Positions 1-42,989 of a DNA stretch of 64,000 nt are shown piece after piece. The stretch is from assembly GCF_902459465.1 (NCBI RefSeq), contig NC_047075.1, forward strand, positions 14,508,001-14,572,000, read 5' to 3'. A model generated the notes under the pieces. The model was not told the DNA's origin. It worked only from the letters and a program-made list of their open reading frames with translations, and ran no database searches. Source of the stretch: Asterias rubens. Taxonomy: Eukaryota. Each line of letters begins with the position of its first letter. Positions within the stretch are counted from its first letter, which is position 1. The position numbers and the translations under genes were made by a program.

Positions 1-464
1 CCGTGCAGCCCGCCGTGCAGCCCGCCGTGCAGCCCGCCGTGCAGCCCGCCGTGCAGCCCGCCGTGCAGCCCGCCGTGCAGCCCGCCGTGCAGCCCGCCGT
101 GCAGCCCGCCGTGCAGCCCGCCGTGCAGCCCGCCGTGCAGCCCGCCGTGCAGCCCGCCGTGCAGCCCGCCCCGCCGTGCAGCCCGCCGTGCAGCCCGCCG
201 TGCAGCCCGCCGTGCAGCCCGCCGTGCAGCCCGCCGTGCAGCCCGCCGTGCAGCCCGCCGTGCAGCCCGCCGTGCAGCCCGCCGTGCAGCCCGCCGTGCA
301 GCCCGCCGTGCAGCCCGCCGTGCAGCCCGCCGTGCAGCCCGCCGTGCAGCCCGCCGTGCAGCCCGCCGTGCAGCCCGCCGTGCAGCCCGCCGTGCAGCCC
401 GCCGTGCAGCCCGCCGTGCAGCCCGCCGTGCAGCCCGCCGTGCAGCCCGCCGTGCAGCCTGCCG
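1..464. repeat. GC-rich 12-bp minisatellite (GCAGCCCGCCGT)n, open at the window start
   Basis: Near-perfect 12-bp period; one 5-bp insertion (ccgcc) near 170; last unit GCAGCCTGCCGA. Confidence 0.98.
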
Positions 465-770
465 AACACCAGCAATTGAACTACGTGGACATTGAAGATC
501 CACCACCCAGCGTGAGTTCAAGTTTCAGTGGTATTGACGCAGAGGGATACCTCAATTTGTCAAACTTCAGAAGGCTAGGCCATTCACAATACAGGCCTGA
601 CCTGCGCCTGCACATCAACTACATTTAAACTAGGGTAAGTTCACAGACCATAGATCTTGGGGTGTTTTATCATAGAGGGGAATATCTGTAATTGTTTTGT
701 TGTAAACACCATTGAAACTGAAAGGAAGATTTGAATGTAGAGTTCTCAATGCTGTGGCACTTTTAAGTAT

Positions 771-1703
771 TGTCAGGGTCTACTGGGGTGTAGCCTGGGG
801 TTGATGTGTGTATGTAGCCATTACTCCTCCGTTCAGATGCAGTAACAATTCACTCGGGAAAGAAAATGGAGTCTATACAGTCCAACTGATGGTCGTTAAT
901 TGTCTTATGATATTTTAATCAAACCCAATTAAATCCCCTACAACAAAGGTACAGAGAGACAATACATTTAGTTTGTTTTACAATAATCTAACTCACTTTT
1001 GTTGTAGTTAAAAATAATACTAATATGATCAATTAATAATTCTGGACTTACCAGACACCTGGGATATAGGCAGGTAACCGACCATGTCTATAAGGCGGGT
1101 ATGCCACAATCTGGGCTGTAATAAATACACATACTAATACAGTCACGCATGGTGAATAGATAGCCCTACAGGTGCACAGTGAAACTCATCCACTTACAAA
1201 TAACAGATTTATACAATGAAATGTAAAATAAATATCCACTCACCAGAGTCCACAAACGAAATTGGGTTGGATAACCACTCCCAGATATATTATGTTCTTC
1301 AATTCCACCGCGAAAGCGGTGGAAACTTTTAACGCCGTATTTTGATTGCCTCAAAGTCTCGTATAGTCTTCAAACAATGGCGACCCTTCAATGCAACTTG
1401 CACTGGTCAAACGTATAGGCAACGTTAGCCCTAGTGCAGAAAGAAGTCACTCCGCGCGCAAAAGAAAACTACATTTGTAGACTCATCAGGGAGTTAAAAT
1501 ACCCGATGACGACCTAATTAAATATTAAATGATAACTTGTAAATCCCACGTTACTATTAATGTGAAATTTGAAGACAAACTAATTTTAGAACCAATTTGA
1601 TAAGACGTACTACATTAAGGCAATGTAAGTACCTACAAAGCGAAGCAAAGTGGCTTGCCGCGTTAAAGGCGCTGTGATAAATGAAAGTTGCCAGACCCCG
1701 ACA
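771..1703 (-). repeat. Gypsy 3' LTR, duplicated copy
   Basis: Begins TGTCAGGGTCT and ends AGACCCCGACA (imperfect terminal inverted repeat, TG..CA); near-identical to 5526-6459 and homologous to 9707-10691. Confidence 0.92.
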
Positions 1704-2305
1704 CATTCCCTGTTTAAGAACCGCGCGACCCGAGTGGTTACGTGAAATATATCGAATTAAGATAATCATACATTTTCCCTTGAACATAGTTGAACACCAA
1801 ATGTTACGAAACAATACACATTTATAGTATAAAATATTCTACAGTCGAAGTCGCTTGTCTCTTTAGAGCAACTGCAGCAGGCCAACCTTCGTTAGTTTAA
1901 AGTCTTAAATCTAAATGTACTACACGTACTGCACATGCTAATGAACTTTATACAATGGAAAGCCCGTGATATGAACATACATACAAAACATTACTTAATA
2001 CAAAATATAGTGAACATCACTTTGGAATCAACCGTGGAACTGACACTGTGTCAGAACCCATCGAACATTAATTAAAAATCCTACAGAGGAAGTACCGTTC
2101 AGCTGAATTATCTACCAGCAATATAAACCTAGTTATAGGATATCACAAATCGGTATCACAAATAAATCACTACAAGAAAATATTAAATCAAAAATAGAAT
2201 ACAGACGACTGTTTTTGTAAAAACAAATCTAAATAATCGTTAACTTGTTTATATTTACTTCCCAGGTAAACGATATAAATGAAAAACAAAGTTGAATACA
2301 AGTAA

Positions 2306-2923
2306 CTAATGTAGTCTAAACCGGGCTACCACTTCTCTAATGCCTCTACAATATCTGATCATCCCTTCAACAGTTAGATGACATCCATCTATTAACAACC
2401 ATGGATGGTTAACCCGCCTCTGTGTGTACATTCGCACACTAGGATAGTCACTTCTCAACCGGCGAACTAATTGAGAATTGAATCTACCAGCTCTATTGTT
2501 AAATGTTGAAACAGTAATTTGACCAGCCCTGGTGATTCGTGACCTTCTGATGACTGATAAAACTACTACATGGCGGGGTGGCAATGCTAAGCCAAGTATC
2601 AAATCGAGAAATCGAGTTGTTTGTTGCACCACTGTGTCAGGTGTACCTGACGGATCACACAGATAATTAGTACCCATGTCTATAATTAATATATCAATCG
2701 GTTCGGCGGCAATCTTACGAATATAATGGTCAGTACTATCAAAAATACGCCCAAAGGTCAAACCAGGATGGCCCTCGACAAATACATCACATAGCCAGTC
2801 CGGAGCGAGACCCAATAGCTCTGCCATAGACGAACCAGTCTCCCTAGACCGTCTTAGCAAACGTGCCGGAAATGAATGCCCGTACATAAACACACGAACA
2901 CGATCAGCCATTGTAACTTCCAA
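2306..2923 (-). CDS. SGNH/GDSL-type hydrolase (esterase) ORF inside the LTR retrotransposon, copy 1 (205 aa)
   Basis: Block I YGHSF, block II GHPG, block III GTNYL and block V DGCHL in the correct order and spacing; open frame ATG to stop. Confidence 0.85.
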   Translation of the reverse strand: MEVTMADRVRVFMYGHSFPARLLRRSRETGSSMAELLGLAPDWLCDVFVEGHPGLTFGRIFDSTDHYIRKIAAEPIDILIIDMGTNYLCDPSGTPDTVVQQTTRFLDLILGLALPPRHVVVLSVIRRSRITRAGQITVSTFNNRAGRFNSQLVRRLRSDYPSVRMYTQRRVNHPWLLIDGCHLTVEGMIRYCRGIREVVARFRLH

Positions 2924-3462
2924 TGCCTGCAGTCAACAAAAGTTGACACAATAATAAGAACATTTAGTAACACAACCAATAACAAATTACAAGTTTTAAA
3001 AATGGTCTCTGACCCAATCCGCAACAATAAATAACAATAAAGTAATAAACTTAAAATATACAGGCAATATACATGCAGAGGTGAATCGTTCGACTCAAGT
3101 CAAGTATCACCACATAAAACTGTAGTGACACAAGCTACCCTCATAGTATATTATGTAATATTATAACAAACTGTTTGTTTCCCTTTTCGTCACATATCAA
3201 AATCAAACACAAACGGAGCCTACAAAAATGGTTGGACTATTCTAAGGTATGACTATGTGTATGAGGTGGATCTTGCGACCCAGGTCAGGTATCACCACAC
3301 ACGAGTGTTGTGATACAAGCTACCCTCAATTTAAACACAGGTATAATAGCCAAAACATTGTCAATTTTACAACGCTGCCCTTAAGTAATGGCACTGTGCC
3401 AGCCACCTCGCTTCTTTGCTATCCGCTTGGACCTACGGAGGGAGTGCTGTACTGGAAGACTA

Positions 3463-4670
3463 TCATCTGAACCTTGGGTCAGTTCTAGCCGGCCCACTTG
3501 TTAGCGTCTTAGCGTTTTTGGCTGGTCGTGATGTCTTCTCTGTCTCCTTCTGTGTGATGACCTGTGGGAGGAAGAGGTTTTGTGGAATTAACACAACCTC
3601 GTCATCATCAGACGAAGAAAGAATGTCGGATGAGTCATCCCTACGCGAGGACTCTGTCTCGGACAGGGAGTCAACCTCTGGAAGAAGATCTGGAGGGTCA
3701 CTCACTTCACTAAAATTACACCTGGTATCAAGAGTGAGCAGCGTCCGATTCAGCCATCTTTCAGTACCTCCAGATACAGGCCTTACTGCATACAAATCCT
3801 TATCTACATTACGTTCGACCACCACATAGGACTCAATTTGTGCCTCCCGGTAAAAGCACATTTCTTTACCAATACTCGACTACCCACAACGAATGGTTCG
3901 CCCCTGCACTTCTTGTCATGCCGTAGTTTATTATAGCTAGCAGCTTTTTCAAGGCGATCTCTGACAACCCTGGACATTTGTTCCAACAATCTAGCTTGCT
4001 GTTGTACAAAACCCTCTGAAAATTCCTGACTAGCGTTCCCAATCGGATGATCCAAATTCACAGAAGCTTCCCGCCCGAATAAGAGAGCATAGGGACTAAC
4101 TCCGGTTACACTATGAGGCCTCGAGTTATATACGTACACAAGGTGAGGCAATGCCTCTGGCCATTTCCTTCTATCCCTAGCATCAATTGACTTAACTAGG
4201 AAACATAGCGTCTTGTTGAAACGCTCCGTCTGAGCGTTACCCTGAGGGTGATATGGGCTTGTTCGAGTTTTCTTTATACCGTAAAGTTGGCATATTTCCT
4301 TCACTAGGTTACCCTCAAAGTTCCGACCTTGATCGGAGTGGATCCGCTTAGGGATGCCATAATGAGAAAACCAGTGATCCCTCAGTACCCTCGCTACGAC
4401 CGGTGCGGTCTGATTTTTACATGGGACAGCGGCAGCATATTTTGTGTATGAATCTGTCATAACAAGCACATCTTCCTATCCACCTCGTCCTCGATCTAAT
4501 TTAAGAAAATCAATAGCTAGACATTCCATTGGTGTGAAAGACAGAAGGTGTCTCATTGGTGGCCTGACTACTGGACTTGGAGTCTTTGAAACAGTGCACT
4601 TGAAACAACGGTGCACATAGTCACGTACTCGAGTTGACATCCCTGGCCAAAAACAACGTGAACGTAACAA
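3463..4670 (-). pseudogene. Gypsy integrase remnant, copy 1 (H2C2 zinc-binding end, rve core, GPY/F region)
   Basis: RCFWPGM..VRDYVHRCFKC, LAIDF, IHSDQGRNF, TSPYHPQGNAQTERFN; TAG at 4476-4478 where copy 2 has TAC; frameshift near 3810-3860; truncated by the minisatellite at 4670. Confidence 0.93.
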
Positions 4671-5219
4671 AGCCCGCCGTGCAGCCCGCCGTGCAGCCCG
4701 CCGTGCAGCCCGCCGTGCAGCCCGCCGTGCAGCCCGCCGTGCAGCCCGCCGTGCAGCCCGCCGTGCAGCCCGCCGTGCAGCCCGCCGTGCAGCCCGCCGT
4801 GCAGCCCGCCGTGCAGCCCGCCGTGCAGCCCGCCGTGCAGCCCGCCGTGCAGCCCGCCGTGCAGCCCGCCGTGCAGCCCGCCGTGCAGCCCGCCGTGCAG
4901 CCCGCCGTGCAGCCCGCCGTGCAGCCCGCCGTGCAGCCCGCCGTGCAGCCCGCCGTGCAGCCCGCCGTGCAGCCCGCCGTGCAGCCCGCCGTGCAGCCCG
5001 CCGTGCAGCCCGCCGTGCAGCCCGCCGTGCAGCCCGCCGTGCAGCCCGCCGTGCAGCCCGCCGTGCAGCCCGCCGTGCAGCCCGCCGTGCAGCCCGCCGT
5101 GCAGCCCGCCGTGCAGCCCGCCGTGCAGCCCGCCGTGCAGCCCGCCGTGCAGCCCGCCGTGCAGCCCGCCGTGCAGCCCGCCGTGCAGCCCGCCGTGCAG
5201 CCCGCCGTGCAGCCCGCCG
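4671..5219. repeat. 12-bp minisatellite (GCAGCCCGCCGT), about 46 units
   Basis: Perfect 12-bp period; directly abuts the truncated integrase of copy 1. Confidence 0.98.
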
Positions 5220-5525
5220 AACACCAGCAATTGAACTACGTGGACATTGAAGATCCACCACCCAGCGTGAGTTCAAGTTTCAGTGGTATTGACGCAGAGG
5301 GATACCTCAATTTGTCAAACTTCAGAAGGCTAGGCCATTCACAATACAGGCCTGACCTGCGCCTGCACATCAACTACATTTAAACTAGGGTAAGTTCACA
5401 GACCATAGATCTTGGGGTGTTTTATCATAGAGGGGAATATCTGTAATTGTTTTGTTGTAAACACCATTGAAACTGAAAGGAAGATTTGAATGTAGAGTTC
5501 TCAATGCTGTGGCACTTTTAAGTAT

Positions 5526-6459
5526 TGTCAGGGTCTACTGGGGTGTAGCCTGGGGTTGATGTGTGTATGTAGCCATTACTCCTCCGTTCAGATGCAGTAA
5601 CAATTCACTCGGGAAAGAAAATGGAGTCTATACAGTCCAACTGATGGTCGTTAATTGTCTTATGATATTTTAATCAAACCCAATTAAATCCCCTACAACA
5701 AAGGTACAGAGAGACAATACATTTAGTTTGTTTTACAATAATCTAACTCACTTTTGTTGTAGTTAAAAATAATACTAATATGATCAATTAATAATTCTGG
5801 ACTTACCAGACACCTGGGATATAGGCAGGTAACCGACCATGTCTATAAGGCGTCCCATGCCACAATCTGGGCTGTAATAAATACACATACTAATACAGTC
5901 ACGCATGGTGAATAGATAGCCCTACAGGTGCACAGTGAAACTCATCCACTTACAAATAACAGATTTATACAATGAAATGTAAAATAAATATCCACTCACC
6001 AGAGTCCACAAACGAAATTGGGTTGGATAACCACTCCCAGATATATTATGTTCTTCAATTCCACCGCGAAAGCGGTGGAAACTTTTAACGCCGTATTTTG
6101 ATTGCCTCAAAGTCTCGTATAGTCTTCAAACAATGGCGACCCTTCAATGCAACTTGCACTGGTCAAACCTATAGGCAACGTTAGCCCTAGTGCAGAAAGA
6201 AGTCACTCCGCGCGCAAAAGAAAACTACATTTGTAGACTCATCAGGGAGTTAAAATACCCGATGACGACCTAATTAAATATTAAATGATAACTTGTAAAT
6301 CCCACGTTACTATTAATGTGAAATTTGAAGACAAACTAATTTTAGAACCAATTTGATAAGACGTACTACATTAAGGCAATGTAAGTACCTACAAAGCGAA
6401 GCAAAGTGGCTTGCCGCGTTAAAGGCGCTGTGATAAATGAAAGTTGCCAGACCCCGACA
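5526..6459 (-). repeat. Gypsy 3' LTR (934 bp)
   Basis: TGTCAGGGTCT...AGACCCCGACA; flanked by the TSD on the left and the PPT on the right. Confidence 0.93.
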
Positions 6460-6471
6460 CATTCCCTGTTT
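6460..6471 (-). promoter_or_regulatory. Polypurine tract
   Basis: Minus strand AAACAGGGAATG immediately precedes the TGT of the 3' LTR (also at 1704-1715). Confidence 0.7.
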
Positions 6472-7061
6472 AAGAACCGCGCGACCCGAGTGGTTACGTG
6501 AAATATATCGAATTAAGATAATCATACATTTTCCCTTGAACATAGTTGAACACCAAATGTTACAAAACAATACACATTTATAGTATAAAATATTCTACAG
6601 TCGAAGTTGCTTGTCTCTTTAGAGCAACTGCAGCAGGCCAACCTTCGTTAGTTTAAAGTCTTAAATCTAAATGTACTACACGTACTGCACATGCTAATGA
6701 ACTTTATACAATGGAAAGCCCGTGATATGAACATACATACAAAACATTACTTAATACAAAATATAGTGAACATCACTTTGGAATCAACCGTGGAACTGAC
6801 ACTGTGTCAGAACCCATCGAACATTAATTAAAAATCCTACAGAGGAAGTACCGTTCAGCTGAATTATCTACCAGCAATATAAACCTAGTTATAGGATATC
6901 ACAAATCGGTATCACAAATAAATCACTACAAGAAAATATTAAATCAAAAATAGAATACAGACGACTGTTTTTGTAAAAACAAATCTAAATAATCGTTAAC
7001 TTGTTTATATTTACTTCCCAGGTAAACGATATAAATGAAAAACAAAGTTGAATACAAGTAA

Positions 7062-7679
7062 CTAATGTAGTCTAAACCGGGCTACCACTTCTCTAATGCC
7101 TCTACAATATCTGATCATCCCTTCAACAGTTAGATGACATCCATCTATTAACAACCATGGATGGTTAACCCGCCTCTGTGTGTACATTCGCACACTAGGA
7201 TAGTCACTTCTCAACCGGCGAACTAATTGAGAATTGAATCTACCAGCTCTATTGTTAAATGTTGAAACAGTAATTTGACCAGCCCTGGTGATTCGTGACC
7301 TTCTGATGACTGATAAAACTACTACATGGCGGGGTGGCAATGCTAAGCCAAGTATCAAATCGAGAAATCGAGTTGTTTGTTGCACCACTGTGTCAGGTGT
7401 ACCTGACGGATCCCACAGATAATTAGTACCCATGTCTATAATTAATATATCAATCGGTTCGGCGGCAATCTTACGAATATAATGGTCAGTACTATCAAAA
7501 ATACGCCCAAAGGTCAAACCAGGATGGCCCTCGACAAATACATCACATAGCCAGTCCGGAGCGAGACCCAATAGCTCTGCCATAGACGAACCAGTCTCCC
7601 TAGACCGTCTTAGCAAACGTGCCGGAAATGAATGCCCGTACATAAACACACGAACACGATCAGCCATTGTAACTTCCAA
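7062..7679 (-). CDS. SGNH/GDSL-type hydrolase ORF, copy 2 (205 aa)
   Basis: Same motifs as 2306-2923; differs by a single C-to-W substitution next to GTNYL. Confidence 0.85.
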   Translation of the reverse strand: MEVTMADRVRVFMYGHSFPARLLRRSRETGSSMAELLGLAPDWLCDVFVEGHPGLTFGRIFDSTDHYIRKIAAEPIDILIIDMGTNYLWDPSGTPDTVVQQTTRFLDLILGLALPPRHVVVLSVIRRSRITRAGQITVSTFNNRAGRFNSQLVRRLRSDYPSVRMYTQRRVNHPWLLIDGCHLTVEGMIRYCRGIREVVARFRLH

Positions 7680-8218
7680 TGCCTGCAGTCAACAAAAGTT
7701 GACACAATAATAAGAACATGTAGTAACACAACCAATAACAAATTACAAGTTTTAAAAATGGTCTCTGACCCAATCCGCAACAATAAATAACAATAAAGTA
7801 ATAAACTTAAAATATACAGGCAATATACATGCAGAGGTGAATCGTTCGACTCAAGTCAAGTATCACCACATAAAACTGTAGTGACACAAGCTACCCTCAT
7901 AGTATATTATGTAATATTATAACAAACTGTTTGTTTCCCTTTTCGTCACATATCAAAATCAAACACAAACGGAGCCTACAAAAATGGTTGGACTATTCTA
8001 AGGTATGACTATGTGTATGAGGTGGATCTTGCGACCCAGGTCAGGTATCACCACACACGAGTGTTGTGATACAAGCTACCCTCAATTTAAACACAGGTAT
8101 AATAGCCAAAACATTGTCAATTTTACAACGCTGCCCTTAAGTAATGGCACTGTGCCAGCCACCTCGCTTCTTTGCTATCCGCTTGGACCTACGGAGGGAG
8201 TGCTGTACTGGAAGACTA

Positions 8219-9252
8219 TCATCTGAACCTAGGGTCAGTTCTAGCCGGCCCACTTGTTAGCGTCTTAGCGTTTTTGGCTGGTCGTGATGTCTTCTCTGTC
8301 TCCTTCTGTGTGATGACCTGTGGGAGGAAGAGGTTTTGTGGAATTAACACAACCTCGTCATCATCAGACGAAGAAAGAATGTCGGATGAGTCATCCCTAC
8401 GCGAGGACTCTGTCTCGGACAGGGAGTCAACCTCTGGAAGAAGATCTGGAGGGTCACTCACTTCACTAAAATTACACCTGGTATCAAGAGTGAGCAGCGT
8501 CCGATTCAGCCATCTTTCAGTACCTCCAGATACAGGCCTTACTGCATACAAATCCTTATCTACATTACGTTCGACCACCACATAGGACTCAATTTGTGCC
8601 TCCCGGTAAAAGCACATTTCTTTACCAATACTCGACTACCCACAACGAATGGTTCGCCCCTGCACTTCTTGTCATGCCGTAGTTTATTATAGCTAGCAGC
8701 TTTTTCAAGGCGATCTCTGACAACCCTGGACATTTGTTCCAACAATCTAGCTTGCTGTTGTACAAAACCCTTTGAAAATTCCTGACTAGCGTTCCCAATC
8801 AGATGATCCAAATTCACAGAAGCTTCCCGCCCGAATAAGAGAGCATAGGGACTAACTCCGGTTACACTATGAGGCCTCGAGTTATATACGTACACAAGGT
8901 GAGGCAATGCCTCTGGCCATTTCCTTCTATCCCTAGCATCAATTGACTTAACTAGGAAACATAGCGTCTTGTTGAACCGCTCCGTCTGAGCGTTACCCTG
9001 AGGGTGATATGGGCTTGTTCGAGTTTTCTTTATACCGTAAAGTTGGCATATTTCCTTCACTAGGTTACCCTCAAAGTTCCGACCTTGATCGGAGTGGATC
9101 CGCTTAGGGATGCCATAATGAGAAAACCAGTGATCCCTCAGTACCCTCGCTACGACCGGTGCGGTCTGATTTTTACATGGGACAGCGGCAGCATATTTTG
9201 TGTATGAATCTGTCATAACAAGCACATCTTCGTATCCACCTCGTCCTCGATC
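8219..9252 (-). pseudogene. Gypsy integrase remnant, copy 2 (5' part deleted)
   Basis: GRGGYEDVLVMTDSYTKY, IHSDQGRNF, HPQGNAQTERFN; homology with copy 1 stops after TCGATC at 9252, where the element's leader sequence takes over. Confidence 0.92.
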
Positions 9253-9684
9253 GTGCGAATTTAAACCCCATTGCACTACCCAATTAGACCAACTAGTAGC
9301 TTAAAAGTACATAAACAGAAATGCAAGTTTCACAAAAATATAATCAAACTACACCAAAGAACTACTACACACACGTCTCCTTTAAAGCAATAACAACCCT
9401 TGTCGAAAGCCTAACCCATGCATAGCTATAGACCACATGTGCCCAAAGTCGCAGTCAAAACAATAACATCCACTATAAATTGGTGAAATAGAAACGGTCA
9501 CCCGACATGTTACAACATAGAAAAAGGTCGTACTTTGGCACAATTAAATATACCGTGACAAAATCAAATGTGGGGTGCCAATATTCAGTGAATATCCCGT
9601 AAATATACAAATTAAAGAAAGTTGTTGTGGTGCTGGGGATTAATTAAATTTAACAATCATCAGTAGAATGAATTGATTCCTGGA

Positions 9685-9703
9685 AATCCTGTCTACGACG
9701 CCA
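9685..9703 (-). promoter_or_regulatory. Primer-binding site, tRNA-Ser-like
   Basis: Minus strand TGGCGTCGTAGACAGGATT starts 3 nt after the 5' LTR; it is complementary to a tRNA 3' end AAUCCUGUCUACGACGCCA with a G discriminator, typical of tRNA-Ser. Confidence 0.75.
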
Positions 9704-9706
9704 AGC

Positions 9707-10691
9707 TGTCAGGGTCTACTGGGGTGTAGCCTGGGGTTGATGTGTGTATGTAGCCACAACACCGGGGTGAGGATTACTCCTCCGTTTAGATGCAGTAACA
9801 ATTCACTCGGGAAAGAAAATGGAGTCTATACAGTCCAACTGATGGTCGTTGATTGTCTTATGATATTTTAATCAAACCCAATTAAATCCCCTACAACAAA
9901 GGTACAGAGAGACAATTTATTTAGTTTGTTTTACAATAGTCTAACTCACTTTTGTTGTAGTTAAAAATAATACTAATATGATCAATTAATAATTCTGGAC
10001 TTACCAGACACCTGGGATATAGGCACTAGCTCTCCTAACCGACCATGTCTATAAGGCGTCCCACGCCACAATCTGGGCTGTAATAAATACACATACTAAT
10101 ACAGTCACGCATGGTGAATAGATAGCCCTACAGGTGCACAGTGAAACTCATCCACTTACAAATAATGAGAAATGTTTATAGCCACAAATAACAGTTTTAT
10201 ACAATGAAATGTAAAATAAATATCCACTCACCAGAGTCCACAAACGAAATTGGGTTGGATAACCACTCCCAGATATATTATGTTCTTCAATTCCACCGCG
10301 AAAGCGGTGGAAACTTTTAACGCCGTATTTTGATTGCCTCAAAGTCTCGTATAGTCTTCAAACACTGGCGACCCTTCAATGCAACTTGCACTGGTAAAAC
10401 GTATAGGCAACGTTAGCCCTAGTGCAGAAAGAAATCACTCCGCGCGCAAAAGAAAACTACATTTGTAGACTCATCAGGGAGTTAAAATACCCAATGACGA
10501 CCTAATTAAATATTAAATGATAACTTGTAAATCCCACGTTACTATTAATGTGAAATTTGAAGACAAACTAATTTTAGAACCAATTTTATAAGACGTACTA
10601 CATTAAGGCAATGTAAGTACCTACAAAGCGAAGCAAAGTGGCTTGCCGCGTTAAAGGCGCTGTGATAAATGAAAGTTGCCAGACCCCGACA
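9707..10691 (-). repeat. Gypsy 5' LTR (985 bp)
   Basis: Homologous to 5526-6459 with several small insertions; same termini; followed by the TSD GTAT. Confidence 0.93.
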
Positions 10692-10819
10692 GTATATTTT
10701 AACAAGATATTGATACAAAAATATTGAAAATGAAAAATAAAAATTCCCATTAAAAATTACACGCCCTAGTTTTGAAATCCATAAGCAGTGACAGTTCAAG
10801 TGTAGGCCAACGTGTAGAT

Positions 10820-11017
10820 ATTAGACTCTGCAAAAGAAAACAAATAAAGAAAGTTTACAAATTAGCAACCTAAACCCCCAAAACGGAGAAGATAAGAAGT
10901 GTTGTAGAGAGGATAAGAAGTGTTGTAAGCTACAACACTTCCTATCTTCTCCTTTTGGGGGGTTTAGGTTGCTAATGTGTAAACTTTCTTTATTTGTTTT
11001 CTTTTGCAGAATCTAAT
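10820..11017. mobile_element. About 200-bp palindromic (foldback/MITE-like) element
   Basis: ATTAGACTCTGCAAAAGAAAACAAATAAAGAAAGTTTACA... at the left is the near-perfect reverse complement of ...TGTAAACTTTCTTTATTTGTTTTCTTTTGCAGAATCTAAT at the right; arms about 80 bp. Confidence 0.8.
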
Positions 11018-12894: not shown

Positions 12895-13400
12895 TTGCAG
12901 ATGTGAGCAAAGCAAAGTTACACAGACAAGCCAACTCATTTTCATCAGAAGCAACTGCTCCTGACAATGAGCAGATATCAAGCAAAGATGATGCAAGCCC
13001 CGCTCTTGCAGGACCAAACCAAGCTGATGTCAGCGACAACGTTGATGACGATGGAAGTGGTAGTGAAACGTACCTAGTGACCTTGCAGATGTGAGCAAAG
13101 CAAAGTTACACTGACAAGCCAACTCATCTCCATCAGAAGCAACTGCACCTGACAATAAGCAGATATCAAGCAAAGATGATGCAAGCCCCGCTCTTGCAGG
13201 ACCAAACCAAGCTGATGTCGGAGACAACTTTGATGATGATGCAGATTGCTACATCTTGCCTAGTTACCTTGCAGATGTGAACATAGAAAAACTACTTGAA
13301 CAAGCCAACTCATCTCAATCAGAACCAAATGCAGAAAAGGAGCAAATATCATCCAAAGATAATGCAAGCTGCTCTCTTGATGATGAAGACAACTTTGAAG
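12895..13400. repeat. Three diverged 186-188-bp tandem repeats upstream of the recombinase ORF
   Basis: TTGCAGATGTGA recurs at 12895, 13083 and 13269, each followed by CAAGCCAACTCAT and AAAGATGATGCAAGC-like blocks. Confidence 0.85.
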
Positions 13401-13534: not shown

Positions 13535-16500
13535 TTGTGCCTGACAGCTGTGATGAACCAGCAAAAGCAAAAGAAGCGGAAGAGATGTCTTGATGTGATT
13601 CGAGCAAAAGGAGATCATATCCATAATATGAGTGTTGTTAAGCATCACAAGGGAGAGTTGATCCTTGCAAGAAGACCAACAGATGTGCTTGATATAAGCA
13701 ACTATGGCCCCTGCCCCAGCTGTAAAGAATGGCTACGGCTGACAATAATAAAGCGACATCAATCTTCCTGTCCGGGACAAGAGGAGGAAACTCATGCAAG
13801 TACAACGTCTAAAGGGTGTCTGCTGCTTCAGTCTAATGTCCTCGCAGGAAGGGTAAATGATCGGGCAAGCAAAGCTTTGAGAGATGAAGTCTTCTCTATC
13901 ACGAAGGATGATGAAATAGTTCAAATAGCCCAGTGCGATGCTTTAATCATTGCCCTTGGTAATGACTGGATGATTAAAAATGTTGGCAACAGATTAATGC
14001 GCAAGTATTATACATCCAGTAAAATGAGATTGGCTGCTCGAATAAAAATTCAGCTCAACCGCCTAGCAACTCCACAGTCTGGGACTGAATTGCAAAACTA
14101 TCTCCATCCGCAATACTTTGAGGAAGTGACCAAAGCTGTCATGTTGGTTGCTAAGCAAGATGCAGGTGATGAAGAGGATCTTCAGTCGCCCTCTAATGCT
14201 ATAAAGCTATCTCATGATCTAAAGAAATTGGCAAGTATAAAACTGGCCAAAGCTATCTGTACAGGAGATGACATAAAAAGGAGAGAATCAAAAGATTTTC
14301 TTAAAGTAATCACGATCAATTTCTCCACAAAGCTTGCACGAGTTTTGCTTAGTGAGAGACAGTTTGGAGTGCGTAAACCATTGCCACTACCAAGATATAT
14401 AAAGAAACTGGCAGACTAAATTAGTGGAGAGTTGCAGTCCCTGGATCTGAAGGACTGCTCATACAGCAACTTCACAACAGCAGTGAAATTGGTCGAAACA
14501 AAATTGATTACATATAATCGGCGTCGGTGCGGAGAGCTTCAGGCAATGCTGTAAGTAAAAAAAAATGCATTATGTTTTACTTGTCAGTGTAGTGAAGTCC
14601 AGATCCAGAGTGACTCCTATACAATGAATGCAAAGTACTTTTAAAAGTTATCTTGAGTCCAACCTCAGTTCAACATTGTACAAATGTGCTTATGTTTGCA
14701 CTGCACTTGAGCCTGACACCAAATATTAGACGTCAAGCCAGATTCAAATTGAATGTAACCATGAACTTTGAATGTGGACTCGAGTACATGTACATTGTAC
14801 AAAATGTGTATGTTTTAATCACAAAAGCAAGCACAAGCAAGCTTCTGCGTAAATTTGTACAAGTTTTTTGTTTTACAGCAAGACATATACTGTACTGTTG
14901 GAGTATGTTGGATGAGTGACTAAGTAAATAATTCAAATAAATGTATAAGAATTTCTATCATAACGCAACAATTACCAAACAGATTGGGACATTTTATCAG
15001 TATACATTTTACATGTACAGTTAAACATTAAAAAGTTTGCTCCTTCCCAGAAATATTGTAAAATGCAGTCATCCATTGTTCTACATAGTAGATGACATTT
15101 CTATTTTCAAAATAATGGACCAGCTTTTGGAGTGACTTTGTAACTTCAGATAATTTATAGAAGTTTTTTTCTAAAATAATAATTGCAGCTTAAGCAGCTA
15201 CTCCCAACGCAAGAAAGGAATCAGTGAGGTTGAGGCAGAGGTGATGCAACTGACCACCTTTGAACAGAAACTTGCAGAGTCACAGCAGCTCGTCGAAATC
15301 CGTGGAAAGGTAGTTATTTGTTATCTTGAATCCTCGATTCTGATAGGTTGATCCATGGCAACAACAGTGTGATAATAACTTATATTGCACGGTCTATATT
15401 GCTCGAGCGTATTGTTTTGTTAGCTGTTCTAACTGCGCGTATTGCGCTTTTAAAGATAAATTATTCACTGTACATTAAAAAGTGGCGCGTTTGTATCCCA
15501 TCACGCTGATCGTAACCAGTGTTTTTGAAGCAAACTCGTTACATTTAACATAAAAATTATCACTATACTGCAAAACACATGGGAGGCAGAATATTTGGAG
15601 TTTCCAGATATGTTGAATTCGGGATTGATAATGTTTACTTAAAAATGTTAAAAATGTTCAATTCTTGTTAACATTGTACTGTCTTTTATTGATGCAAAGG
15701 AAAATTTAATAATTCTAGCGCTTCGTAGTAAATAAAGTCATGCGTCTTTCACCTTCACTGGGTGTCAAGTTTGCTTAAAGATAAATTTGTTATCACACGC
15801 GCACTCGTGTAATACAAAAAAATATAGCACGTCTGCATCACATATTAAACTCGGACTGGGACGCAGAATCGCTATATTTTTCTGTATAACAATCGCGCTA
15901 GTGATAACTAATAATAGGATATTATATTTCCATAGATATCCCACTATTGCATACAGCAGAATCAGCAATGAATCAAATGATTTATTTTCAACAGACTGGG
16001 CGAGCTGTACCAGTGATACTACCTGCTGAAGTGCAGCCAGTAATGGAGTATCTGACAAGCAGCGAAGTCAGGAGAATTGCAGGAATCATGCCTGTAAACT
16101 CCTATGTTTTTGCAAGCAAAGGTATGAACAAGTTTGACAACAGTTCCTCTTTAATACCCAAATTCAAAAATGAATTCAGAAGACTAAAAGCATTTAAAAA
16201 TATACATGTAACTTCATGTTCTTGGAAAGATAAATAACAATACCACGCTCTCGATCAGGATTGTGTGTGCATATGTTTTGGTAAATAGCAGACTCTTATT
16301 AATGAGATATTGGGACCAGCGCAATTAAATAAATGATGTTGTAATAATAGTAGTGGGAAAGAAAGAGCAACAAAATGTTTACACTGAAATTTGTGCTTTG
16401 ATATGAAGCAAAGTACATAAAGTACAGAATCTGTATTTTATTACACGCCAGGTGCTGGAGTGGTCCGGGGGTACAATGCAGTCGACAGTGTGGCATCCTC

Positions 16501-32406: not shown

Positions 32407-35400
32407 CTAAGCGCTTCTGTGATTGAAGAGATGGGTTTTAAGTTGTGATTTAAATTGTTCTAGTGTGGCACAGTCTTTGAGATTGTTGGGAAGAGAGTTC
32501 CATAGTTTAGGTGAAGCATATTGGAAGGAACGTTGACCGTAGAACTTCGTGTGAACTGGAGCTGCTATGAGAAGACCTTTTGAACTGGAACGAAGTGTTC
32601 GCGGAGGGTGGTAGTGCTGAATTAAATCCTGGAGATAGTCTGGTGCTGATCCGTTTTTGCATTTGTAGGTGAGTGTTAGGAGTTTGAAAACTATCCGTGA
32701 TTTAACTGGTAGCCAGTGGAGATTGCGAAGGATCGGAGTGATGGGTTCAAGTGATCGGGTTCTAGTGATGAGTCTGGCTGCAGAATTTTGAACGCGTTGG
32801 AGTTTATGAAGTTGACATTCTGGTAATCCGTATAAGAGGCTGTTATTATTGTCAATGCGACTCATCACAAATGCATGAATCAATTTTTCCGTTATCGATT
32901 GGTCAAGATATTGTCTGATTTTTCCGATTTTGTGCAAACCAAAAGAAGATGCTCGGCACAAATTACTGACATGCTTTGCCATGGTGAGTTGATCATCGAT
33001 GATGACACCCAGGTCCCGTGCATGTGAAGTTGGCTCAAGAGATGAATCTGCTATGGTGATAGGTTGGAGTGAACTCTTGCTTCTGAATTTGGATGAAAGA
33101 CGGAGAAACTCAGTTTTTTGTTGATTTAACTTTAAGCCATTTCTTGAAGACCACACTTTGATGTCATTTAAGCAAGCTTCAAGTTTTGGTATGATAGTCG
33201 ACTGAGTGTTGTGATTGAGAATGGTGTAAACCTGGGTGTCATCAGCGTACATGGTGTATGACATTCCATGGGACTTGATCACATCTTCCAGGGGTGAGGA
33301 ATAGAGCGTGAATATGGAAGGACCCATTACGGAGCCTTGAGGGACTCCGCGTCGAGGGAACTGGTTTGATGATATCTGATCTCCAATGACTACTGACTGA
33401 CTGCGATTGGTGAAATAAGATTGAAGCCACTTGAGAGCATTGTTGTGAAATCCGAATCTCTGCTCTAGCCGATCAAAAAGAATGTTGTGATTAATAGTGT
33501 CAAATGCTGCTGTGTAGTCTAATAACAGTAAGACTGCTTCCTGACCACTATCCAATGCAAGCAGTAGGTCATTGATGACACGAAGCAGGGCAGTTTCACA
33601 ACTATGATTTTTTCGATACGCTGATTGCATAGTTGCATTTAGGTTGTTTGTTGACAGGTAGTTCTGCATTTGAGAAACTGCCGCACGCTCAACAGTTTTT
33701 GATAAGAACTTCAAGTTGGAGACTGGTCTATAATTCTTGAGATCTTCAGGATCCATCTGAGGTTTCTTTATCAGTGGCTTGATGGTGCACATTTTAAGAT
33801 GTCTGGAAAATGTGCCAAAGCGAAAGACCTGTTGACAATACAACAAATAACTGGTGCAAGTTCATTAGCACATTTTTTGAGAAGACCAGTTGGAATTGGG
33901 TCAAGACTGCTGGTAGATGTCGGAGAATTGGCTATGAGTCGAATGATTTGCAGTGTAGAAACGGGTTCAAATGTCTGAAAGTCGGATTCACATATCTGAA
34001 ATTGAATATGTGAAACATCAGTAGTCGGCTTTTCTTGAATCTCCATAGCTATGCGTTCAATTTTCTCACTAAAGTAATGAGCAAAGCGTTCTGTTAGTGG
34101 TACTTGTGAGGTGTCGGTAGATGGGAGAGTTTTTGCTGGTGATGTTTTGCACAACTTATCCACCTTGTGAAAGAGCTCATGCATACTGCAGTTCTCCAGT
34201 TGAGCAGAGTGGTAGCCGTTTTTAGCCTTATGAATCATTTGATTGTATTGACGACACTTAGCTCTAAATATCTGTCGATCAATCTCAAGTTTCGAGGCTC
34301 GCCATCTACGCTCTAAACATCTCAGTTCCGATTTGAGTTTGTGTAGACTGTCATTATACCAAGGTGCATTTGGGCGACACGTAATTGTTCTAGTGATCAA
34401 GGGGGCGTGTTTGTCGAGGAGATTGCTCAGAACTGACTCATACTGTTCAACTAACTGGTTGAGATCTGTTGATGGAGCTGTGTATAATTCAGAATCAAGA
34501 ATGTCCTGTTGAAATGTATCGATGTCAATTTCACCAACTTTCCGTGTTTTTATGACTACTTTAGTAGGGTCGGGTTTGCGAATGGCAAGCAAACACATGA
34601 TGGCGGCATGGTCTGATGGTAGGATCTGCGTGGTGGAAACATCCGAAACCGAGTGATCAGAAGAACGTGTGAGCAATAAGTCCAGCGTGTGTCCTTGTTG
34701 ATGTGTCGGAACTCTAACATGTTGTTCCAAGCTAAATGAATCAATGAGCTCCAAAAACAACAATGCCTCACGATTAGATTCATTGTCCACATGGAAGTTG
34801 AAATCGCCCACGATCATTAACCGATTCGGCTCTGACACCAGTAGCTCTAAAAGTGTTGAAAAGTCACTCATGAAAGTAGGAAATGTTGGCTGCTTGCTCT
34901 TAGTCAGCTGTGGTCTGTAGACTACTACTAGACGCAAGGGATTTGTCTGATGCGCAGTTATAAACAGGTCCATGTATTCAAATGAGTCCCATGATCTGCA
35001 TTTATTCTCACACACCCGAAAAGTTTTGCGGATGCAAACACCCACACCCCCTCCAGTTCTGCTTCTTCGTGGAATATGGTGAAATGTATGTGTTGGTAAA
35101 GTGTTCAGGAGATCTGCGATTGGAACACTATCACGATCATCACCATACAGCCACGTTTCAGTCAGAGCAAATATGTCTATTTGATTCGAGATAATAAGAT
35201 CGCATATCATCGGGATCTTGGAATTAATTGATCTGGAATTCCACAGAGCAAACTTAGAGTTTAGTGCCCGGACATCATGTCCTTCTTGATCAGAGACATG
35301 AGTATTATTATTATGCTTACATCTCCTTCTGCCACCCTTGCATCCTCTACGTGTTTTTCCTTTCCGATTTATCCCAAGTGAGGTGATAGTGGTCCAAACA

Positions 35401-35762
35401 GTGTTTTCTAAGCGCTGATTGAAGTGTTGAAACTGATAAAGTTGTGATCTATTGTATGATATGCGGCCATCATGTTGGTCAGATATATCTGGAGCACAGT
35501 TAGAAATGGTATGATCTCTGTTTTCAGCAGCAGTAGGTCCTGGGTTAGATTGAATATCCCCTGCCGTTAGTAGTAACTGCACTTGAAATGTGCACAGTGC
35601 ATTGCTGTAGTAAAGCACTTTACCACCCTGGTACTTTACAGGCAGAAGCCGATGGCTTGTCACAATGGATTTCAACAATTGCACTGACAATACATTGTGC
35701 TGTGGTCCAGTGTTGAATAGAAGACAAGCCAGGATGAGTAGAACTTTATGAATAGCTCCCAT
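32407..35762 (-). pseudogene. LINE ORF2 (APE endonuclease plus reverse transcriptase) with one frameshift near 33780
   Basis: LWNSRS, ALTETW, GDFNFH, GHTLDL, SDH; YRPVSNL, QSAYR, LLDYTAAFDTI, GVPQGSVMGP, YADD, LHWLPV. Confidence 0.93.
35535..35570 (-). other. 2A-like (StopGo) peptide motif LLTAGDIQSNPGP
   Basis: Codons 69-76 of the ORF read DIQSNPGP, preceded by LLL; the consensus is D(V/I)ExNPGP. Confidence 0.7.
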
Positions 35763-39840: not shown

Positions 39841-40240
39841 CATCTACTGTACGTAAATGAAAATGTGCATTTTCCCACCCCTGTCATTTTGTAGACCCTA
39901 CAACCCTACACCATAAGACACACTGTTAAAGAAACCCTACACACACTCCTACTCGCCGAGAAAACCCTACACGCATCTAATGTACGTGAATGAAAAAGGC
40001 TTTTTCCTACCCCCTGCTCATTTTGTAGACCCTACAACCCTACTCCATAAGACACAGTGTTAAAGAAACCCTACACACACTCCTACTCGCCGAGAAAACC
40101 CTACACGCATCTACTGTACGTAAATGAAAATGTGCATTTTCCCACCCCTGTCATCTTGTAGACCCTACAACCCTACTCCATAAGACAGAGTGTTAAAGAA
40201 ACCCTACACACACTCCTACTCGCCGAGAAAACCCTACACG
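39841..40240. repeat. 133-134-bp tandem repeat, three copies
   Basis: CATCTA(C/A)TGTACGT..ATGAAAA starts at 39841, 39974 and 40108; each unit ends ...CGCCGAGAAAACCCTACACG. Confidence 0.92.
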
Positions 40241-41060: not shown

Positions 41061-42867
41061 GGTATTTTCCTGAATTGTATAGATGTGGAGCTACTTTTTG
41101 AGACCTATTCCTTTACATAGCACCATGAAAACTATAGTACATTTTGTTAATATCTTAGTGTTGTGTTTTATATAAAAAAAAACCAGTATGGACATCTCTG
41201 TCTGGATGATAAGGTTTTGCAGCCAACTGTTTTTGTCAAACAATAATTTTGCTAACAGAGGAGTATTTAAATCAGAAGAAGGAATATCAGATTCAGATTC
41301 AGTAAAGTTTGTTTAGCTCTGATCAGCAATCTCAAATGATGTTCTTGTTGCTTGCTTGTAATACTCCTTTGCATGGTAATTTTTTAATTTTCATGTACAG
41401 GTTCTCAGCATTCCACAATTGAAGATGTAGCCAATCAATCAGATGACGAGAATCCAGATGATGAGAAACCAGATGAAGAGAATCTAAATGAATAGAATCC
41501 AGAAAGCTTCATCATTGAAGAGTCAGTAGGTAACGACAATGCCGAATTACTTGATCAGTTAGATAATCCTCCCGAACAGAAAGCACACAGGTCAAAAAAT
41601 AGGATGGTCAAACTAAAGCGTAACAAAAGTCTATCATATTATTCTGAAAAGTCTCACAAATTCATCGAGGGTAGGAAAACAGTGCGCAATCAAATGTGTA
41701 CAGGGAAAGGTGTAAATATAAGCTAAGTTGCACTAAATTTGAGTGATCAGGTAGTAAAGTCTTTAAGAAAAGACTTCTATGAAGCAGGAAACTTGGCTCT
41801 TTAGAGGGAGTACATAGCGCGACATATCAGTTACACTGTTGTCAGTAAAAGTCACAAAAACAGACTTAAATACACTCTTCCACATCCATTCGTCCCAGGG
41901 GGAAGTGTTACAAGTTTTCAGGACAACATTTTTGTGTTCACTTGCAATATCGGACCGCCAGGTTCGTACTGTTCTGCACAAGAAAAGTAGACTAACTGGG
42001 GTACTAGAGAGAGAAAAAAGGGATGGCAAACAAAACCAACAGCCTCACAAGAGGCGTAGGATTCTCCAACACCTCAATCGCTTTCCCCGTGTAGAATCTC
42101 ACTACTGTAGAGCATCCACTAAGTGGAATTACCTCTTTGCAGAACTAACAAGGAAGAAGATGTAAAGGATGTTCAAAAAGGATCGTCCTGATTGTGGATC
42201 GTTTTCTCTTTATAAGAAAGTAATAAGAGAACAAAATCTGAAAATTCACCGGCCAAAAAAGGATAAATGTGGACGATGCAAAACATTTCGTCAATGTAGT
42301 GAAGTAGAACGTCCCAAAATACCAAACCGACTACGACAGACACAGGGAAGAGATTTCTGAAGTAAGAAAAGTCAAAGATCTTAGTAAAGAACGTGCCATT
42401 GAAGACGTCTCCCACAGTTCTGCTCTTTGATTTACAGCAGAACATATACCTCCCAAAATCGAACAGGGGCAAAATATTCTACAAACGCCGCCTTGCATGT
42501 TACAATTTCACTATTTATGACTTGGCTTCTTGCGAAGGGTTCAGCTACCTCTCCAATGAAACAATCACAAAGCGAGGGGCGTGTGAGGTATCCTCTCACG
42601 TCATGGACTACCTCCAAAAACTTGACATAGAGGGTAAAGAGTCAGTCGACTTCTTCTGCGATGGTTGTGCGGGTCAAAACAAGAATTCGATCCTCCCAGC
42701 AATGTTTACAGATTTCTTGTCTAAATCGTTAAACATAAAAGTAATAACCATATATTATACTTTGAAAGCAACCATGGCCAAAGTGATGGGGATAGCATGC
42801 ACTCGGTGATTGAGCAAAACCTGGCCCGTACAGAAGTTTTCCATCCATGTCAACTATCTAACATAAT

Positions 42868-42940
42868 GGGGAGTAATGGATCAGCGTTCTTGCCGCACCC
42901 CCCGTGAGTACCCAGGTTCGCCTGGGGAAACTGATGATCC
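42868..42940 (+). ncRNA. HDV-like self-cleaving ribozyme at the LINE 5' end
   Basis: P1 GGGGAGT/ACCCCCC, P2 GGATCA/TGATCC, P3 GCG/CGC, L3 TTCTTGC, GT linker, P4 CCCAGG-TTCG-CCTGGG, J4/2 CTGA with the catalytic C at 42931; G+1 is the first base after the TSD. Confidence 0.82.
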
Positions 42941-42989
42941 AACCAGCTTGCCAAATCCTGCACCGGATCCTGGCCATGATCTCGAACAC

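Follow-up and report, generated by a model that had tools for sequence, protein, structure and literature searches.

A 64,000-nucleotide stretch of the Asterias rubens genome (contig NC_047075.1, positions 14,508,001 to 14,572,000 of the forward strand; hereafter, the window) carries at 5526–10691, on the minus strand, a single insertion of a Ty3/Gypsy-type long terminal repeat (LTR) retrotransposon. The open reading frame (ORF) located between the integrase and the 3′ LTR of this element, termed ORF3, encodes a stand-alone SGNH/GDSL hydrolase of about 200 aa, in which the Ser-Asp-His triad and the oxyanion Gly and Asn are intact. The element can be assigned with high confidence, in both its identity and its architecture, to a Ty3/Gypsy lineage with three genes, namely gag, pol (protease, reverse transcriptase (RT), RNase H, and integrase), and the SGNH-encoding ORF3. 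At the level of the family, ORF3 is an integral gene under purifying selection, whose position, strand, length, and catalytic residues are kept. The overall reading of ORF3 as a lineage-borne, selected SGNH third gene with a proposed accessory role is given a probability of roughly 0.78. Accessory enzymes of retroelements indicate life-cycle steps outside the core gag-pol machinery; the Ty3/Gypsy ORF3 esterase described here is compact, apparently widespread, and homologous to the hydrolase of Ngaro elements, a GDSL-type ORF3 as such having a precedent in the Vesta elements of rotifers (PMC5408684).

The ORF3 product as an SGNH hydrolase

ORF3 occurs twice in the window, each time as an ORF of 205 codons on the minus strand (2306–2923 and 7062–7679), or of 201 aa from the first ATG (2309–2911 and 7065–7667), with a single residue difference between the two copies. 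The integrase core (Pfam rve; E = 7.5e-11 and 1e-11, respectively) precedes each copy on the same strand, and an LTR is found about 600 nt downstream of each. An earlier reading of this DNA from its letters alone (the sequence-only reading) had described a 205-aa ORF with four SGNH blocks on the sense strand of the element, between the integrase and the 3′ LTR, and both the ORF and its placement are confirmed; the blocks read G-H-S (block I), G (block II), G-T-N (block III), and D-G-C-H (block V), and they are invariant in the 15 aligned relatives.

The hydrolase assignment is based on the relatives of the window protein and on its fold, because the protein taken alone falls below the Pfam threshold and gives no significant match in direct Pfam or PDB sequence searches. 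Sixteen relatives were retrieved among 5.8 billion proteins, nearly all of them 193–235 aa in length and, where full-length, 37–99% identical. In the alignment of 15 of these relatives (alignment A1), 26 columns are invariant, including S13, G47, G50, N82, D175, and H178; in a further alignment (A3), the same catalytic and oxyanion residues are invariant except for G47, which is nearly so. Gypsy-borne and Ngaro-borne members alike, down to 26% identity, all keep the Ser, Gly, Asn, Asp, and His of these blocks. The hidden Markov model (HMM) search that had been suggested as a check on the SGNH identity came out in its favor for the family, with PF13472 matched by 14 of the 15 relatives (E ≤ 0.01) and the Pfam GDSL cut-off exceeded by the members from loci L014, L015, and L017; likewise, profile searches of the PDB with the family profiles yield weak but significant matches to solved SGNH enzymes, PAF acetylhydrolase Ib among them.

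The AlphaFold model built on the alignment is confident (predicted local distance difference test score 93.2, predicted template modeling score 0.90) and shows a three-layer alpha/beta/alpha arrangement with five parallel strands (residues 5–11, 41–47, 74–78, 114–118, and 159–162), the catalytic Ser standing at the start of helix 1. Foldseek retrieves 170 PDB fold matches at E ≤ 1e-3, and the best 50 of these 170 are SGNH enzymes or designs built on them; the top matches (3dt8, 1wab, 4tx1, 4ppy, and 4iyj; template modeling (TM) score 0.67–0.73) comprise the alpha subunit of brain PAF acetylhydrolase Ib, carbohydrate acetylesterases, and Bacteroides acylhydrolases. PAF acetylhydrolase Ib alpha and the bacterial and fungal acetylesterases (1wab, 3dt8, 1fxw, 4tx1, 4iyj, 4hf7, and 3mil; TM score 0.64–0.73) resemble the ORF3 product as single-domain proteins of about 200–215 aa, and PAF acetylhydrolase Ib also resembles it in having no secretion signal. 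They are, however, only 13–18% identical to it and are enzymes of the cell, unconnected with mobile elements, and the block I signature G-H-S-F-P-x-R is specific to the retroelement family. This signature, together with a length of about 200 aa and a basic character, can serve as an annotation marker for the family, some members of which, including that of the window, are missed by Pfam.

The character of the protein bears on the question of env, since insect Gypsy-type elements, the errantiviruses, carry env between pol and the 3′ LTR, and the sequence-only reading had accordingly proposed an accessory protein standing in this slot instead of env. The positional part of that proposal holds, in that ORF3 occupies the post-pol slot, and a separate, presumably subgenomic message as for errantiviral env is plausible for ORF3 as well; the comparison with an envelope protein, however, does not extend to the product, which has no homology to errantiviral env and possesses no signal peptide, transmembrane anchor, fusion peptide, or coiled coil. 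No hydrophobic N-terminus or membrane-like segment was found in 22 family members (a single apparent exception is due to an N-terminal extension whose start codon is doubtful), their highest 19-residue hydropathy is mostly below 1.6, and none of the 22 has a long helical region. All but one of the 22 are basic, with isoelectric points of 9.0–10.4 and net charges of +5 to +15. With the catalytic Ser at residue 13 of a compact globular domain of 200 aa, there is no room for a signal peptide. Judged from these sequences, the product is not env-like, and it would be a cytoplasmic-type, strongly basic enzyme of 23 kDa rather than a membrane or secreted protein. That ORF3 nevertheless replaces env in function, acting as a surface or entry protein of an infectious element (a receptor-destroying or membrane-perturbing esterase, comparable to the haemagglutinin-esterases), is very improbable: the errantiviral slot speaks for it, as does the presence of sialate and carbohydrate O-acetylesterases among the fold matches (6xpg, 7pzh, and 4tx1), whereas the lack of a signal peptide, membrane segment, or long helical region throughout the 22 members and the position of the catalytic Ser speak against it. 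Moreover, the only viral structures matched are generic SGNH domains from phages and giant viruses, and the authors of the rotifer study concluded likewise against env for their GDSL ORF3 (PMC5408684).

Conservation, selection, and expression across the Gypsy lineage

The same ORF follows gag and pol in at least six divergent relatives (39–51% identity) from marine metagenomes and Mb-scale assemblies. In the 7–8-kb contigs that carry protein P0003, a gag of 341 aa with one CCHC knuckle, a pol of 1437 aa, and the SGNH ORF are arranged in this order on one strand, and one such contig closes on itself by a 119-bp overlap, as expected of a read-assembled LTR element. The 1437-aa pol has DTGA and YLDD motifs and the Pfam domain order RVT_1, RT_RNaseH, Integrase_H2C2, and rve; the nearest solved structure to the pol of contig L001 is Ty3 Gag-Pol (7q5b, E = 9e-108). 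The gag-pol-SGNH order on a single strand is found in L001–L003, again in L011 (gag 340 aa, pol 1429 aa, and SGNH 209 aa), and in L007, where the ORF of pol type that precedes the SGNH ORF measures 1585 aa. Protein P0183 is encoded at five dispersed places of one Mb-scale assembly (sample ERZ25072999), after a gag of 467 aa and a pol of 1442 aa; at these places, the SGNH ORF always starts 164 bp after pol and the 200-aa protein is identical in five of five, whereas three of the five have pol broken up into two or three ORFs. This sample, found by exact-protein look-up, is biased to intact ORF3. In the contigs of P0011 and P0014, the SGNH ORF lies downstream of an ORF for pol or integrase and in the same orientation, with no gag seen. 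The central proposal of the sequence-only reading, a Ty3/Gypsy lineage with an SGNH hydrolase in the post-pol slot, is thereby upheld by the one-stranded gag-pol-SGNH order of L001–L003, L011, L007, and the P0183 places, and the occurrence of the ORF in further family members, which it had named as a check, extends to the P0011 and P0014 contigs.

The family is also numerous. A family profile run against 1.84 billion cluster representatives gives 1051 matches (233 at E ≤ 1e-10), nearly all of them stand-alone proteins of about 200 aa; one metagenome scan contributed four further loci only, and a pattern scan found no relative in 185,579 prokaryote species genomes or in the IMG/VR viral contigs.

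Selection is readable between families. The ratio of nonsynonymous to synonymous substitution rates (dN/dS) of the window ORF3 against the 76%-identical family in L005 is 0.11 (dS about 1.5), which answers the concern that it might lie near 1; against the 51%-identical relatives, the ratio is not computable because synonymous sites are saturated. At the locus itself, the openness of ORF3 is uninformative on selection. The sequence-only reading had pointed out that ORF3 is open in both copies while pol is broken, and this description holds insofar as ORF3 is open and pol is truncated or frameshifted; the two copies, however, represent one insertion followed by a segmental tandem duplication (99.56% identity), so that their openness counts as one observation and not as two. 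The probability of ORF3 staying open by chance is about 0.7–0.8, assuming that 4% of substitutions create stops and that 0.8–1.6% divergence has accumulated since insertion, and the caution that intactness over such a short ORF could be accidental was justified at the observed LTR-LTR divergence of 1.6%. ORF3 probably remains open here mainly owing to the young age of the insertion, and it is the family comparison that carries the argument. The singleness of the local event, this chance probability, and a within-genome dN/dS of about 1 would all suit an ORF3 that has stayed open by chance as a relic, or that this single insertion picked up once from a host gene, without meaning for the family. 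Such an origin is barely credible: at least six divergent lineages whose gag-pol is intact have the gene at this place and in this orientation, dN/dS between families is 0.11, and 26 columns are invariant; the synteny of the compared sequences already refutes it at the family level.

The pol-ORF3 spacer is non-coding and varies across lineages from 164 to about 550 nt, which indicates that ORF3 is not an extension of pol and suggests that it would be translated from its own, probably subgenomic, message. In the window, a 22-nt motif (2926–2947 and 7682–7703, minus strand), in which a 6-bp hairpin leads into a pyrimidine tract and CAG|G, has its end 14 nt upstream of the ORF3 start codon. It is kept in L005 (171–192) despite diverged flanks and synonymous sites and occurs in L006 (403–424) as well, and comparable pyrimidine-AG sites are located before the ATG in L001, L011, and L007. 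The motif may be a splice acceptor or a translational element, and its sequence fits a spliced subgenomic ORF3 message. As separate observations, the spacer of the window contains a 66-bp motif twice at 82% identity (3078–3143/3263–3328 and 7834–7899/8019–8084), and that of L007 (4882–5139) contains five 43-bp tandem units; these spacer repeats could be an internal regulatory region.

Several results weigh against the reading of ORF3 as a selected third gene of the lineage. The window protein alone scores 15.4 bits against Pfam Lipase_GDSL_2 (cut-off 32.9; E = 0.026), and the window copies and the 99%-identical P0001 vary among themselves at four residue positions, two of which are in nearly invariant columns. 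The within-genome dN/dS against the 99%-identical L006 is about 1, on 4–5 differences, which is the expectation for dead genomic copies. Within the window's own family, taken as over 76% identity, no full-length element was recovered, and the three-gene architecture is derived from relatives of at most 51% identity, the shared primer-binding site (PBS), and 60% identity in the integrase. The 454 nt of leader that remain contain no splice donor of strict consensus; the gag region and the greater part of the leader are deleted. Lastly, the local history of rearrangement could in part be an assembly artefact.

Other retroelement esterases and the proposed role

Three further proteins, P0090, P0084, and P0087, are matched by profile A1 among the 1.84 billion cluster representatives (E = 5.5e-17, 7.3e-18, and 2.4e-17, respectively) at 26–29% identity, and they share with the window family the G-H-S-F block I and the G-x-N-D, N..N, and D-G-x-H motifs. 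Their genes adjoin a gag-like ORF, an RT/RNase H ORF, and a tyrosine recombinase of 295–311 aa. Loci L018 and L019 are two dispersed copies that share about 7.8 kb at 98.5% identity, and the element of L019 (7124–14998) has the split direct repeats of the Ngaro type, A1...B1-A2-B2 (A1 7124–7305, B1 14263–14362, A2 14552–14733, and B2 14899–14998), an arrangement that defines Ngaro elements according to bioRxiv 10.1101/2021.08.05.455354. In L014, L015, L018, and L019, the SGNH ORF comes first, 5′ of gag, RT, and the recombinase. A 204-aa ORF near the Ngaro-like copy of L018 (1404–2018) equals the SGNH ORF in length but is not related to it. When 126 full-length representatives are compared with both sets of references, 65 come closer to the Gypsy-borne set and 33 to the recombinase-borne set, the other 28 being ambiguous. 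By these sequence comparisons, ORF3 of the window and the Ngaro-type SGNH ORFs belong to one sequence family. As a further member of the family in an unassigned context, P0060 in L017 (3406–5448) precedes a tandem of three 109-aa ORFs that match nothing in Pfam, on a 5.7-kb contig in which no RT is found.

The SGNH hydrolase ORF of Ngaro elements is already on record (Goodwin and Poulter 2004, as cited in bioRxiv 10.1101/2021.08.05.455354 and PMC6681497), and in amphibian Ngaro elements the ORF is placed after the recombinase, as described in the former. The Ngaro-type elements thus have in common with the window lineage a stand-alone SGNH ORF of about 200 aa from the same family; they differ in possessing a tyrosine recombinase and split direct repeats in place of the DDE integrase (rve) and LTRs of the window element, and the SGNH ORF of L014, L015, L018, and L019 stands 5′ of gag, in contrast to its location 3′ of pol in the window lineage. 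It is tentatively proposed, at somewhat less than even odds, that this one SGNH family is a transferable module exchanged between Ty3/Gypsy elements, as a 3′ ORF3, and Ngaro-type elements, as a 5′ first ORF, and kept catalytically intact by selection. If true, the exchanged module would imply a common and unrecognised ester-cleaving step in the intracellular replication of retroelements, one that is distinct from, and acquired independently of, the esterase of CR1/L2 long interspersed nuclear element (LINE) ORF1 proteins.

The Vesta LTR elements of bdelloid rotifers carry a GDSL esterase/lipase ORF3 after pol (Rodriguez, Kenefick and Arkhipova 2017, PMC5408684); this ORF3 retains every catalytic residue and lacks membrane and coiled-coil segments, and an auxiliary, non-env role was proposed for it by the authors. 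Vesta therefore resembles the window lineage as a retrovirus-like LTR element whose third ORF, after pol, is an SGNH/GDSL enzyme with intact catalytic residues. The Vesta ORF3 amplicons, however, measure about 1.3 kb in contrast to 0.6 kb for the window ORF3, a comparison made by description only. The rotifer lineages encode a dUTPase, a domain that is not among the Pfam matches of pol from L001, L007, L011, and the P0183 places, and relatives of the window family come from marine metagenomes and large eukaryotic assemblies, whereas Vesta comes from bdelloid rotifers.

An esterase in the ORF1 protein of CR1/L2/RTEX LINEs and in Penelope-like elements was reportedly described by Kapitonov and Jurka in 2003. 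The CR1/L2 esterase is the best mechanistic analogy for ORF3, as a retroelement-borne SGNH fold with an intact triad; unlike ORF3, it is a domain of an upstream ORF1 protein, fused to a coiled coil, in a non-LTR element. For the ORF1 protein esterase of ZfL2-1 (4c1b), the SGNH fold, enzymatic activity, and the binding of acidic phospholipids have been demonstrated experimentally (PMC3905857). This structure is absent from the PDB searches with the family profiles up to E = 10 and from the best 50 of the 170 fold matches of the ORF3 model; furthermore, an ORF scan with a local profile HMM of alignment A1 found no related esterase in the three LINEs of the window. Five settings of SGNH esterases are now at hand, namely LINE ORF1, Penelope-like elements, Ngaro, rotifer Vesta, and the Ty3/Gypsy lineage with a compact ORF3. 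The question of which ester is cut is sharpened by a Gypsy-borne gene that is selected, not env-like, homologous to that of Ngaro, and without detectable relation to the LINE esterase.

In the mechanism envisaged, ORF3 would be translated from its own, probably subgenomic, message, with the motif of pyrimidine tract, AG, and hairpin located 13–15 nt before the ATG. The enzyme would act on a short-chain ester, judged by its nearest folds, which are short-chain acetyl-ester hydrolases, and would cleave off a short acyl or acetyl residue, its substrate being an ester of lipid or glycan type, and at the same time bind an anionic partner, either an acidic phospholipid or the RNA of the element; this activity would aid particle assembly or trafficking, as proposed for the CR1/L2 LINE esterase. 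So specific a biochemical role is a conjecture drawn by analogy and is rather doubtful in its entirety, and a lipid or membrane role of ORF3 in particular would rest on the same analogy. The main alternative to a catalytic role is a non-catalytic binding module, in which ORF3 would mainly be a basic RNA or lipid chaperone of SGNH fold and would not depend on hydrolysis. The OSK domain of Oskar has an SGNH fold but no activity, the family is basic with a net charge of +5 to +15, and the LINE esterase has a low turnover and binds acidic phospholipids (PMC3905857), all of which would suit a chaperone; pure binding, however, does not need catalytic residues, and these are invariant down to 26% identity, so that this alternative is judged unlikely and the catalytic role is preferred.

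The insertion, its duplication, and other features of the window

The element at 5526–10691 is bounded on the minus strand by an LTR pair with TGTC...GACA ends, as established by self-comparison and direct reading of the ends. A block of 933–985 bp is present three times in the window (771–1703, 5526–6459, and 9707–10691), with the TGTC start and the GACA end in three of three copies; only the uppermost copy (9707–10691, 985 bp) acts as a 5′ LTR, being followed after 3 nt by a TGG-initiated 18-mer (9686–9703, minus strand). A 16–18-mer of this site recurs identically in L001–L003, again directly after the LTR end (...TGACA), in marine-metagenome contigs whose ORF3 is just 51% identical, and it occurs once in the window, with 0.02 matches expected by chance; the 18-mer is accordingly taken as the PBS. 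The four bases ATAC are found on the outer side of both the upper LTR (10692–10695, the upstream copy of the target-site duplication) and the middle LTR (5522–5525, the downstream copy), a 4-bp match with a chance probability of about 1 in 256. The PBS, the LTR ends, and this duplication place the element at 5526–10691 instead of the extent of 1704–9706 that the sequence-only reading had given. The 5′ LTR and the 934-bp 3′ LTR (5526–6459) differ by 1.6% substitutions and three indels. As a side observation, a 200-bp palindrome (10820–11017) is located just outside the 5′ LTR; no runs of N occur within the 64-kb window.

Inside the LTRs, all on the minus strand, a leader (5′ untranslated region) without gag (9253–9685; tblastn with the gag of L001) reaches as far as an internal deletion, after which a pol remnant (8219–9252) retains the integrase core and C-terminal part only (Pfam rve, E = 1e-11; tblastn with the pol of L001). 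The pol-ORF3 spacer (7668–8218), which holds the two 66-bp motifs and the 22-nt hairpin/acceptor-like motif, then leads to the intact 201-aa ORF3 (7062–7667; ATG at 7665–7667, stop at 7062–7064), supported by the alignment and the model, and to a 3′ untranslated region (6460–7061), whose purine-rich tract beside the 3′ LTR (about 6460–6471) is short and weak. Beyond the element, a host flank of about 300 bp and a 12-nt GC-rich minisatellite (4671–5219) occupy 4671–5521 and form part of a duplicated unit. In that unit, on the same strand as the element, a pol remnant (3463–4670; residues 996–1334 of the L001 pol by tblastn; Pfam rve, E = 7.5e-11) abuts the minisatellite and is followed by an intact ORF3 encoding the 201-aa hydrolase (2306–2911), one residue off the product of 7065–7667, and by an LTR copy (771–1703) with no PBS after it, then a host flank (465–770) and the minisatellite (1–464).

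Gene content was assessed by tblastn with the gag, pol, and ORF3 of L001 as queries. No match to the L001 gag was obtained anywhere in the window, and protease, RT, and RNase H, like gag, were not found in either copy by Pfam or by tblastn with L001; the L001 ORF3, by comparison, aligns end to end with ORF3 in both. The L001 pol, of 1437 residues, is matched at 60% identity over residues 1054–1334 in the LTR-bounded copy and 996–1334 in the duplicate. In the former, one large deletion took the protease, RT, RNase H, and the integrase N-terminus, and the remnant aligns in two frames, indicating at least one frameshift, with no in-frame stop in the aligned part; in the latter, pol is truncated at the duplication junction and has at least one frameshift and one in-frame stop. 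Both copies are immobile, non-autonomous remnants.

Self-comparison shows that 1–4496 and 4761–9252 are 99.56% identical, with a period of about 4756 bp. The duplicate unit (1–4670) comprises the integrase remnant, ORF3, the LTR, 305 bp of host flank, and the 12-nt minisatellite, and the middle and lower LTRs are both followed by an identical 305-bp stretch and then by the GC-rich minisatellite, not by a PBS. An LTR-internal-LTR-internal-LTR array created by inter-element recombination is ruled out by this host flank in place of a PBS and by the inclusion of flank and minisatellite in the duplicated unit. Since the LTR pair differs by 1.6%, whereas the duplicated LTR (771–1703) diverges from the 3′ LTR (5526–6459) by 0.43%, the insertion is older than the duplication; since the duplicate retains 58 more pol residues (tblastn) than the LTR-bounded copy, the internal deletion either postdates the duplication or arose on another chromatid. 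On the assumption of a correct assembly, the junctions suggest an order of events in which the element would have inserted next to a GC-rich minisatellite, a 4.76-kb segment (the C-terminal part of the integrase, ORF3, the 3′ LTR, the flank, and the minisatellite) would then have been duplicated in tandem, and the LTR-bounded copy would finally have lost everything between the leader and the integrase core by internal deletion. The minisatellite forms 38 units at 1–464 and 46 units at 4671–5219 and marks one breakpoint of the duplication; the window begins inside it, and the array may extend upstream. An ORF on the minus strand (4476–5276) traverses the minisatellite repeat into the pol remnant.

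The survival of ORF3 in both units after the loss of the mobility functions, in an array that may continue beyond the window, would also agree with co-option by the host, whereby the tandem array of integrase tail, ORF3, and LTR is retained for host use of the esterase. This is highly improbable, for the duplication is very recent (0.44% divergence) and selection is not readable from it, the units differ at a single coding position, by a non-synonymous change in an almost invariant column of the family, and no host-type promoter or exon structure is seen at the locus.

No tRNA or Rfam match was found anywhere in the window. Outside the element, three LINE-type non-LTR remnants with apurinic endonuclease and RT are located at 32407–35762 (minus strand), 42393–45800 (plus strand), and 60055–63025 (minus strand), none with a recognisable ORF1. 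A 188-bp tandem repeat of 2.6 units (12895–13369) and a 133-bp tandem repeat of three units (39841–40240) are also present, together with two pairs of near-identical segments, 23223–23741/25090–25661 (1.9 kb apart) and 49978–50277/50697–50996 (0.7 kb apart).

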